This document shows positions 10,101-13,100 of a stretch of DNA of 64,000 nucleotides, one piece after another. Every line of letters starts with the position of its first letter. Within the stretch, counting starts at the first letter, position 1. This DNA comes from Obrimoposthia wandeli (Eukaryota): NCBI GenBank assembly GCA_977020255.1, contig CDROCS010003621.1:372001-436000 (forward strand). The letters are read 5' to 3'. Made by a program: the position numbers and the translations under genes. Under the pieces are notes generated by a model that saw only the letters and a program-made list of their open reading frames with translations, had not been told where the DNA came from and searched no databases.

Positions 10101-13100
10101 CATTTTGAATGATATTATAAACAATAGAATCATTGAAAAATTAAGATTGGTCTATTTTTGTTATCAAAACAATTAATTATTAAGTGTGAATTTAACTGTA
10201 ACGGAATTTTAAATCAATTCGACTATTAATCTTAAGCAGGTATATTTTATTTGAATTTTAAGATTTTGTATAAAAAATAAGAATTGTAGATATTGTTAGT
10301 TTGTAAAATTCTAAAGATGAGTAGTCAAAAAGTAGTCAAATATCTTGTTGAATGCAAAAACGTTTGGAATATTTCGAAAGAATTTCGTAGACCAAGTAAG
10401 TATAATAAGTTAGTAGAAATGGACGTTTCCTTATATAAAAAAGGCTATTACTATAAAAATGCCACAAGAAAACAATCAAACACAGCCATTATTGATTACC
10501 GATTTCTTTTATCCAATATATGTTATTTTGAGTAATATGTACGTTTGTCAGTTGACAAGGGGCGACTTCTTGGCAGACGAGTTTCAAGAGATGATCAGTG
10601 GCGCCTCTGTGATATTTGCTAACAACTTTGCGTTCGGGCCAATGGTGGATCATCAACTTAAGAATAGGTTCACATCGCTGAAGGAAGGGGCCAAGATCAT
10701 CTCCAGCAAGGCGTTTTGTCCTCTCAAGTTCCGCATCACAGATCGCAACCTTGATGGTGAGTGACACTCTTGATTACTTTGTTATCAAACAATTGTCTTA
10801 AAAATGTCGACAGATTCCCGCGAATTTATAATTAATTTTCTTTAAAAATGCTAATTTATTGATAAAATATGCAAGACAGATTTAGTTTTATATCAGAAAT
10901 TATTCTAATGCTAATTAGTTCTTATGTTAGGGGGAATTCTTAGTTTTGGTATGTTTTTTGACATATTTATATAACTTGACTGATTTTGGTCCAATATCTC
11001 CTTACATTATTGTTACATTCATGAACTTATTTTTTGTCAAAAAGTGAAGTAATGTATCAGAAATAATAAAATTAGTTATAAAAAAGGTGTGTAATTAATT
11101 TTTAATTTAAATGCTTATTTGTAAAATACATATTTTATCATTTTTACTCCGTTTGTTGTTCTATATTGTTATGTTTCGTTGCTTTAAGCTATGTATTTTC
11201 GATTTCTTTTCGATTTTATTTGTTTCTATTGGTGATACAATTTGAGAACCAACCAATCAAAACGCAGTAAAAAGAAAATAAACCAATTGGAATAAGTAAT
11301 CAATAAAACTAGGAAACAATGTAGATCGGAAAGAGAAATAATCATGTATGGTGAATCAGTGGACCGATGATAGCAAAGCAAGTTGAGAGTAAGTCATCGT
11401 TGATCGTGCACGCAGATATTTGCTCCATTATGAGAGTCACCACCCGGGCTTGCCCCACCGGAAGAGTTTCCTGGACGTCCAACTCCATCACTTACTACGT
11501 CCAGGAAATAGACAGGTCCCAGGTTAGTGCGTACGAGCGTGTACGTGTGTCTCTGAGTGTCACTCTCTCTTTCTTGTGCATGTCATAAATGTTGACTAGG
11601 ATTCTGTGTTTTTTATTTATTTATGATAAATTGTCGTTAAATTGATTTACTAATGATTGCTAAATGAGTGGAAGTTATGTTTCTGTCTATTTATTTACAA
11701 TAAGCAGTAGTAATAATATTATCGTCTCTGCATCATTAGTCAGTCAATGTTTCTGTATGTGTGTGTTTGTGCATGCTGACTGGCCGCGTCGGTGCAGATA
11801 TTGGCTCCATCATGCGGGTAACCAGTCTCAGTGCTATGAAGGACGCTGTCTCGTGGACTTGCTCAGCATTCAGCTACTTCCTTCATCAAGTGGATCATTC
11901 TATGGTGAGTGATTGACTATCTGACCGGCCTAGTTGTGCATGCTGCATGCGGAGCACGTTTTCATGTTGATTTCCATCTTTACTTTATTCCCATTTAGTA
12001 AAATCAGTGATTCATTAAAATGTTGGAAAATATGGGAAAGATTTTTATGTAATAATAGGTTTAGAAGTCAATAGAATCATTCATAGGTGCTAACATGAGA
12101 AGCTATTTAAAAAACTGTACAGTAATTTATTGTTTCCATATTCAGTATTCAATGATGATCAACTTAAGCTAAATGTAAAGCTATATAATCCCCCTCCCCA
12201 AATAAAAAGGACGAATAAAAATGTAACATTAATTCATTAATACATAAATGTAAAAGTATAAAGATTTACATTTAGTTTTAAATTAAAAAAATATCTATTG
12301 AAAAAGTAGTTAGTAGTTTAAAAATGTTAAAAAAAATTAATAGCAGCAGTATTCATGTTGAATTATCAAGGGTTAATAATTAAAATTGCTTAAAATTAAG
12401 ATACAAATACAGATTAAGTTTGAATAAAATTATAAATAATTTTTTTTTCTAAATTTAAGAAAAATTTTAACTTTATTTTAAAAAATCCTTAAAGAAATAT
12501 AATTTATGTTTATTTTCAACCGATTATATTACTAATAAAGATTAAAAACAATTCTTTTATCCTCTTAATTTTTATTATTATATTTTAATTAGTTGCTTAA
12601 TAATGAAAGTAGTTTGAATGTTATATTAAATACGTTATACGTTTATGTTAACTATTATTTAGTAACAGTAAAAACATTAATAAACAATTCTTTTATCCTC
12701 TTAATTTTTATTATTATATTTTAATTAGTTGCTTAATAATGAAAGTAGTTTGAATGTTATATTAAATACGTTATACGTTTATGTTAACTATTATTTAGTA
12801 ACAGTAAAAACATGGTGATCTACCTCTGTGCTTAAGCTTGATAATCAGTGTAAAATTTCAATTATATTATGTATACTTTGAATATTAAACCATGGAGTTG
12901 GACAATTTGTGTCCAACAAAAAAATTAAAATGTTTGTTACTAACAAAAAATGTATTCAATTCAATATGTACAAAAAACCAATTAAATTTTTTTACGTTCA
13001 TATGCAACATAATATACGAGAAAAAGACCCCTTACATCTCTGCTTTACGTGTGTTTATGAATTCCCTATCAAAATCACACACAACATATTCAACTGATAT

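Follow-up and report, generated by a model that had tools for sequence, protein, structure and literature searches.

Can a single DOT1L gene encode two versions of its catalytic core? This question is raised by a 64-kb stretch of the Obrimoposthia wandeli genome (contig CDROCS010003621.1, positions 372,001–436,000; hereafter, the window), of which the plus strand carries a gene for DOT1L (KMT4), a methyltransferase of lysine 79 of histone H3 (H3K79), as identified from the sequence itself, Pfam, and tblastn. The catalytic core of DOT1L is treated as invariant. To our knowledge, DOT1L is the sole H3K79 methyltransferase, and the alternative splicing known so far for DOT1L and grappa lies outside the catalytic core. 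Within the catalytic domain of the window gene, two tandem exons of 107 nt each (exon A, 11416–11522; exon B, 11798–11904; both plus strand) offer homologous versions of the same segment. Based on comparisons of genomic and protein sequences, we estimate at about 0.7 the probability that they represent, in this genome, an ancient pair of mutually exclusive DOT1L exons that is common to molluscs, nemerteans, and probably annelids.

The exon pair and its place in the catalytic domain

The first-pass annotation of the window had described two tandem 107-nt exons that are flanked by AG and GT, run from phase 1 to phase 0, and are both open, and direct reading of the sequence bore this out. Exon A (borders acgcag/ATATTT...TCCCAG/gttagt) and exon B (ggtgcag/ATATTG...TCTATG/gtgagt) are each preceded by AG and followed by GT(T/G)AGT, with no exon in between. 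The DOT1L frame is open in both, whereas one of the other two frames contains two stops and the other is open but encodes an unrelated peptide. The two exons share 15 of 36 amino acids and 57 of 107 nucleotides. Their similarity is not due to chance, given the reciprocal tblastn match within the window (E = 2.8e-7) and the alignment of both to the same positions of the Pfam DOT1 profile (PF08123; 175–203 for exon A, E = 8.7e-4; 175–205 for exon B, E = 6.9e-5). An assembly artefact was considered and ruled out, because the copies are only 53% identical in DNA and contigs assembled from raw runs also contain the stretch; these runs probably derive from the assembly's own sample, and are thus not independent support.

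The pair is bracketed by two constitutive exons on the same strand. The upstream exon (10552–10756; Pfam DOT1 106–173, E = 1.7e-18) ends in FRITDRNLD plus one base, so that the next exon begins in phase 1, and the downstream exon (13578–13616) starts in phase 0 and carries LEEYF, with L322 and F326 in human numbering, as read from the sequence, the spliced translations, and the position of helix 321–332 (PMC6546062). Splicing in exon A alone or exon B alone gives a continuous DOT1L frame. Because 107 is not a multiple of three, joint inclusion or joint skipping shifts the frame, as had been noted at the outset, and the spliced translations stop early in both cases (8 codons into exon B when A and B are joined, and after about 27 codons when both are skipped). 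Transcripts of these two kinds would presumably undergo nonsense-mediated decay, and one exon would be picked per transcript in the window's organism. The exons are neighbours of equal length with the same type of splice site, the same frame, and clear homology, which are the sequence features by which mutually exclusive exons (MXEs) have been defined (Pillmann et al. 2011; PMC3228551), and they cover the same structural segment. Among human MXEs as catalogued by Hatje et al. (2017; PMC5740500), whose main text does not mention DOT1L, a frame shift on joint inclusion is the commonest class of enforcement, and the window pair is alike in this respect. Exons A and B are a real and probably functional mutually exclusive pair.

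To place the segment in the enzyme, it was aligned to the human sequence in the Protein Data Bank (chains 1nw3 and 3sr4). It corresponds to D286–I321, as the first annotation had it, and the W of VSWT is residue 305. Both exons leave D286, I287, I290, M291, R292, V293, V303–T306, Y312, and D318 unchanged from human, and the VSWT motif and the tyrosine equivalent to Y312 stand at aligned positions in A and B. The sets of residues that each exon was said to keep also agree with human DOT1L (exon A: G301, VSWT, YY, and IDR; exon B: DIG, L296, K300, SY, and LH). Exon A is identical to human at 16 of 36 residues, including I290, VSWT, Y312, and D318, and carries C at 288 and Q at 315. The 2003 paper on the DOT1L crystal structure reportedly describes a role of Y312 in the active site. 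The structural meaning that had been attributed to I290, as a ubiquitin contact, and to W305, as part of a loop, is supported by the cryo-electron microscopy literature: I290 together with L284 and L322 cradles L73 of ubiquitin, and helix 321–332 binds ubiquitin (PMC6546062; bioRxiv 10.1101/501098). The loop around W305 lacks order before the active complex assembles, whereupon it closes the H3K79 tunnel; the W305A change abolishes activity (PMC6546062; bioRxiv 10.1101/501098). L322 and F326 are encoded by the constitutive downstream exon, not by A or B.

In human numbering, the segment comprises a strand (290–296), the flexible W305 loop, a second strand (312–318), and the turn with which the ubiquitin-binding helix begins. 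The catalytic domain of the bivalve Sinanodonta as modelled by AlphaFold, i.e., a model of a mollusc isoform rather than the window's own products, has the same layout (strand 287–293, a low-confidence loop, strand 309–315, and the start of helix 317–327). As modelled, the A/B exon encodes the last beta-hairpin of the DOT1L catalytic domain, and the segment appears embedded in secondary structure, as in other tandem MXEs (PMC3228551, PMC5740500). Differences between the two isoforms would fall within the W305 loop, at residues 310 and 314 beside Y312, and at 289 and 321 near the ubiquitin contacts. Since the residues known to be essential are kept (I290, V303–T306 including W305, Y312, and D318), both products should be active enzymes. 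They might plausibly differ in the methylation state that they produce, in processivity, or in their dependence on ubiquitin (the first annotation had named ubiquitin dependence, processivity, or inhibitor sensitivity), but the direct ubiquitin contact I290 and the catalytic W305 and Y312 are identical in both exons.

Distribution and age of the pair

The window exons are collinear with DOT1L of flatworms, molluscs, and nemerteans in tblastn comparisons. The nearest relatives of the constitutive upstream exon in a HMMER search were trematode and cestode DOT1L (77–79% identical), followed by those of molluscs; the search of representative proteins gave no match above 79% identity, and a flatworm-centred protein search returned parasitic flatworms only. 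These matches place the window's organism among the spiralians, most likely the flatworms. The same 107-nt exon in the same phase exists in an echinoderm, molluscs, a nemertean, and flatworms. As a tandem pair it was found in the genomic DNA of Sinanodonta woodiana (locus L001, 41253–41359 and 41820–41926) and the nemertean Tubulanus polymorphus (locus L005, 3706–3812 and 4204–4310), in both of which a V310 exon comes first and an F310 exon second, in the same order as the I310 and F310 exons of the window. For other species the evidence comes from annotated isoforms and gene models. Isoform pairs of equal length that differ only at about residues 284–319 are annotated in Tubulanus (T. polymorphus XP_074644030.1/XP_074644031.1), Haliotis, Gigantopelta, Mya, Mercenaria, Argopecten, Pecten (P. 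maximus XP_033737589.1/XP_033737590.1), Dreissena, and Sinanodonta (S. woodiana KAL3870080.1/KAL3870081.1, where the difference is limited to residues 286–318), and both versions occur among the annotated isoforms of Mytilus species. Transcript-like contigs exist for both exon types. A Logan-derived protein of 1834 aa (P0351) equals the Argopecten first-exon (V310) isoform bar one residue and comes from a contig of 5849 nt that must be cDNA-like, and a Logan cluster of 53 members (P0268) carries the F310 version of the second exon. In a model from Pinctada imbricata (P0185, 1105 aa), both exons are strung together in frame and in the same order at residues ~283–356 (...DRAM-VN-IGTIMHV...), almost certainly a mistake of the gene model to which the tandem exons gave rise. 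By these comparisons, the pair is not peculiar to the window's genome, and the equivalent mollusc and nemertean exons are annotated as mutually exclusive, in agreement with the initial view, also backed by the Pfam positions and tblastn, that A and B are homologous alternatives for one piece of the catalytic core.

The window pair resembles those of molluscs and nemerteans in that the same 107-nt, phase 1 to 0 exon occurs in tandem with V/I310 before F310; their isoforms match in length and are distinguished by the 36-aa segment alone. It departs from them in its lower identity between exons (15/36, compared to 21–29/36), in C288 and Q315 of exon A, in its shorter intron (275 nt, compared to 391–460 nt), and in a cluster of UGCAUG motifs found in the window only. 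In addition, the mollusc and nemertean pairs have annotated isoforms and transcript-like contigs, whereas the window pair is known from genomic DNA alone. The orthologous DOT1L genes of vertebrates, echinoderms, and arthropods (including human DOT1L and Drosophila grappa) keep the same invariant residues, and a single V310-type exon was found in echinoderms, a hemichordate, vertebrates, and arthropods (by protein sequence, except in the echinoderm Patiria, where locus L006 confirms just one ancestral V310-type exon, at 15611–15717, 107 nt, with the same boundaries as in the window). Annelid proteins carry F310 in Capitella and V310 in Ridgeia and Owenia, and the nemertean Lineus has F310. The genomes of parasitic flatworms (Schistosoma, Opisthorchis, Sparganum) and of Lymnaea contain the F310 exon only, with no first exon at their loci, so that the aliphatic-310 exon was apparently lost or never present. 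Their exon is closest to exon B (58–61% amino acid identity, with DAVSWT and F310 in common).

The two exon types differ in a consistent manner. In all 11 pairs, the window included, V or I at position 310 of the first exon is matched by F in its partner, and positions 289, 300, and 314 differ between the types in 9–10 of the 11. N308 of exon A also recurs in the first exons of four bivalves and of Tubulanus. In maximum-likelihood trees of the 36-aa peptides, all F310 exons and exon B form one clade (support 91/86 with 32 rows and 86/90 with 42 rows) that spans flatworms, molluscs, annelids, and nemerteans, and in the 32-row tree exon B groups with the flatworm exons at 98/99. Exon A lies outside the F310 clade, in the spiralian base without a resolved placement. 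Given the trees and the exon order common to three phyla, the most economical account is that the exon was duplicated once, long ago, on the spiralian stem and that some lineages later lost the first copy, which we favour without regarding it as proven. The first exon would then keep the ancestral aliphatic residue at 310, and the second would carry F310.

Several observations weigh against reading the window pair as a functional copy of this old arrangement. The open frame of exon A found no relative in the protein collection; its branch is the longest in the tree (0.91–0.99), and it lacks G288 and H315, both of which are nearly invariant elsewhere. The trees rest on 36 columns, with the type label partly defined by one of them, and convergence is possible because F310 also occurs in a few non-paired sequences. 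Forcing A and B to be sisters costs 5.3–8.6 log-likelihood units and was not rejected by the approximately unbiased test (p = 0.25 and 0.27). The first exon is dispensable in some lineages, given that neodermatan flatworms and Lymnaea manage with F310 alone. The UGCAUG cluster is not conserved, as the Sinanodonta and Tubulanus pairs have only one exonic and one upstream TGCATG. Finally, window sequence was found in only four runs, all genomic and from one sample, giving no transcript support at this locus.

Some of these points would suit an independent duplication of the F310 exon within the flatworm lineage of the window, after which exon A diverged fast and came to resemble the mollusc and nemertean arrangement by convergence. 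Trees with A and B as sisters survive the test just mentioned, all sampled flatworm genomes have one exon, and the same exon is tandem-duplicated in Schistosoma turkestanicum, so that such an event recurs. However, A falls outside the F310 clade in the best trees, the order of aliphatic-310 then F310 is identical in three phyla, and N308 links A to the first exons of Tubulanus and the bivalves. The A/B identity, which is below that of all other pairs, also fits an old split. We consider a separate duplication unlikely.

The S. turkestanicum case (OX103976.1, L002) consists of a segmental tandem duplication of at least ~6 kb (2741–9000 vs 12322–19304, ~94% identity) that carries a second copy of the 107-nt DOT1L exon (3668–3774 and 13257–13363). 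The two peptides are identical and the flanks slightly different, i.e., this is either a very young exon duplication or a haplotype or assembly duplicate, and the locus contains 677 N. A further model, from the cricket Gryllus longicercus (KAK7873280.1, P0001, 757 aa), contains two complete DOT1 catalytic domains in tandem, which suggests tandem DOT1-like genes fused by the annotator and unrelated to the exon pair.

Probable use of exon A and possible control of the choice

Returning to the reading of A and B as an old functional pair, we asked whether exon A has the properties of a used exon. Silent sites between A and B are saturated (proportion of synonymous differences, pS, 0.81), whereas the proportion of nonsynonymous differences (pN) is 0.38, and pN to the echinoderm exon is nearly equal for the two (A: 0.40; B: 0.41). 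The GC content of exon A is 0.53, and 0.71 at third codon positions (GC3), compared to 0.46–0.58 in the other coding exons and 0.25–0.27 in the surrounding intron. Over the time implied by saturated silent sites, an unused copy would be expected to drift to intron composition and to lose its length, frame, or splice sites, all of which A has kept. On these measures, both exons are under sequence constraint, and exon A is likely to be spliced into functional mRNA.

The contrary view, that only exon B is used and A is a duplication relic (a pseudo-exon not yet disabled), appears rather improbable. It would account for the exclusively genomic runs that carry window sequence, the long branch of A with its replaced G288 and H315, the absence of a pyrimidine tract from the acceptor of A, and the loss of the corresponding exon in parasitic flatworms and Lymnaea. 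Yet the acceptor of exon B is just as pyrimidine-poor, pN to the echinoderm exon does not set A apart, and at a pS of 0.81 exon A still has its exact length, both splice sites, and an open DOT1L frame, as well as a GC3 of 0.71 within an intron of 27% GC and human identity at 16 of 36 residues, with I290, VSWT, Y312, and D318 among them. The two replaced positions also vary in apparently functional DOT1L: the first exons of gastropods have A or T at residue 288, and Q stands at 315 in several single-exon proteins. Across 10300–14500, contigs of the four runs (X1–X4) are continuous through the introns (longest 86 kb) with no splice joints, and the runs thus behave as genomic DNA.

An intronless eukaryotic DOT1L of 1112 aa was found in a metagenome contig of the European Nucleotide Archive (ERZ25073789, L008, 3001–6339). 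It has Q at the H315 position (YYLQ), as does exon A, which shows that this residue is tolerated in a sole-copy gene.

How the choice between A and B might be made was examined in the flanking introns. The inter-exon intron (11523–11797, 275 nt) contains UUGUGCAUG at 11574 and 11767 and a GU-rich tract before exon B, and UUGUGCAUGCUGCAUG (11934–11949, plus strand), which consists of two overlapping UGCAUG motifs, follows 30–45 nt 3' of exon B. All three copies of TTGTGCATG in the 64-kb window lie at the pair (11574, 52 nt after A; 11767, 31 nt before B; 11934, 30 nt after B), and 4 of the window's 15 TGCATG copies fall within 373 nt (11574–11949 region), which has a probability near 1e-3 by a rough scan-statistic estimate. 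The acceptors of A and B both lack a pyrimidine tract, and the 100-nt flanks of the pair have a GC content of 0.39–0.43, compared to 0.17–0.30 at three upstream constitutive exons, with the downstream exons intermediate. From these acceptors, the GC-rich flanks, and the three UUGUGCAUG (Rbfox-type) elements bracketing the exons, exon choice is probably regulated. The Rbfox-type elements would steer it; because the motifs are not conserved at the mollusc and nemertean pairs, such control may be proposed for the window's lineage only.

At finer scale, two GC-rich islands (11350–11600 and 11750–11950, 0.40–0.54 GC per 50 nt) stand out from the rest of the intron (18–32% GC). The GU repeats before exon B lie within the GC-rich flank, and the islands would fit conserved splicing-regulatory sequence.

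Exclusivity enforced by RNA structure was rejected, because inverted repeats in 10700–13700 are at the level of chance (a 10-nt perfect complement is expected ~4 times, by estimate) and the fold of the inter-exon intron has a z of −1.7. No significant docking/selector structure and no U12-type sites were found at the pair, and both exons are of the GT-AG type. Crowding of splice sites or branch points is unlikely given the 275 nt between the exons. With steric hindrance unlikely and the borders ordinary GT-AG, exclusivity is maintained at least by the reading frame. A role of the pair mainly in dosage, through regulated joint inclusion or skipping that yields frameshifted and degraded transcripts, could draw on the early stops of both products and on the MXE-joining reads that frame-incompatible human clusters often show (PMC5740500), but it is very improbable, as a decay switch needs neither of the two peptides and both are conserved across phyla, annotated, and found on transcript-like contigs as full-length in-frame isoforms.

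Relation to known systems and neighbouring sequence

Tandem-duplicated MXEs are a well-known kind of exon (PMC3228551, PMC5740500), and isoforms in RefSeq and GenBank already imply the DOT1L pair. The first-pass annotation knew of no described MXE in the DOT1L catalytic core; this stands as far as papers are concerned, since our full-text literature searches found none describing the exon pair, but equal-length isoform pairs from at least nine species were already in these databases. Since these isoforms have been sitting unremarked in public annotations, the mollusc RNA-seq data now available would allow an immediate test of the idea. The window gene should be given two alternative transcripts in annotation, and a both-exon model, as in Pinctada, would be wrong.

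An alternative catalytic hairpin that spans phyla in the sole H3K79 methyltransferase would be of wider interest than a single locus. An isoform switch inside the core would affect the neighbours of Y312 as well as the loop by which the lysine tunnel is closed, and the exons provide a natural variant pair for asking how product state, processivity, or dependence on H2B ubiquitin is determined by the W305 loop and by position 310. They also bear on whether spiralians adjust H3K79 methylation from tissue to tissue. One tentative and rather doubtful scenario is that Spiralia (molluscs, nemerteans, annelids, and flatworms) have made two H3K79 methyltransferases from a single DOT1L gene since before these phyla split, by swapping the hairpin of the W305 loop and the Y312 strand. 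The universal change from V/I310 to F310, accompanied by linked substitutions at 289, 300, and 314, would alter the properties of either the lysine tunnel or the surface that senses ubiquitin, and the isoforms would differ in methylation state or H2B-ubiquitin dependence and be deployed by tissue or stage.

The remaining DOT1L exons identified in the window are also on the plus strand. The exon at 6856–7107 (5' limit approximate; Pfam DOT1 1–52), found by tblastn with DOT1L of Schistosoma, Sinanodonta, and Tubulanus, ends in IDLGSG. The next (7276–7431, approximate limits; tblastn, Pfam DOT1 52–84) reads GVGQVV...GKPFNPF, so that the S-adenosylmethionine-binding D-x-G-x-G-x-G motif is split as IDLGSG/VGQVV across the exons ending at 7107 and starting near 7276. 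Pfam DOT1 was covered piecewise (profile positions 1–52, 52–84, 106–173, and 175–205); positions 84–106 fall between the scanned pieces, as the 7264–7380 piece ended before the exon end near 7431. Downstream of the constitutive exon at 13578–13616, the next coding exon (13764–14393, with a provisional 3' limit) encodes a low-complexity basic region, based on its open frame and cag acceptor.

The long intron after exon B contains a 136-nt direct tandem repeat (12533–12804, 96% identical), and 137 nt of it (12553–12691) are missing from a contig derived from the reads of run X3, so that the copy number of the repeat seems variable within the sample. Two further elements in the window, both downstream of the DOT1L gene, are unrelated to the exon pair: a Maverick/Polinton-like element at 26000–43700 and a 692-aa open frame at 60419–62494 that resembles a retroelement reverse transcriptase.

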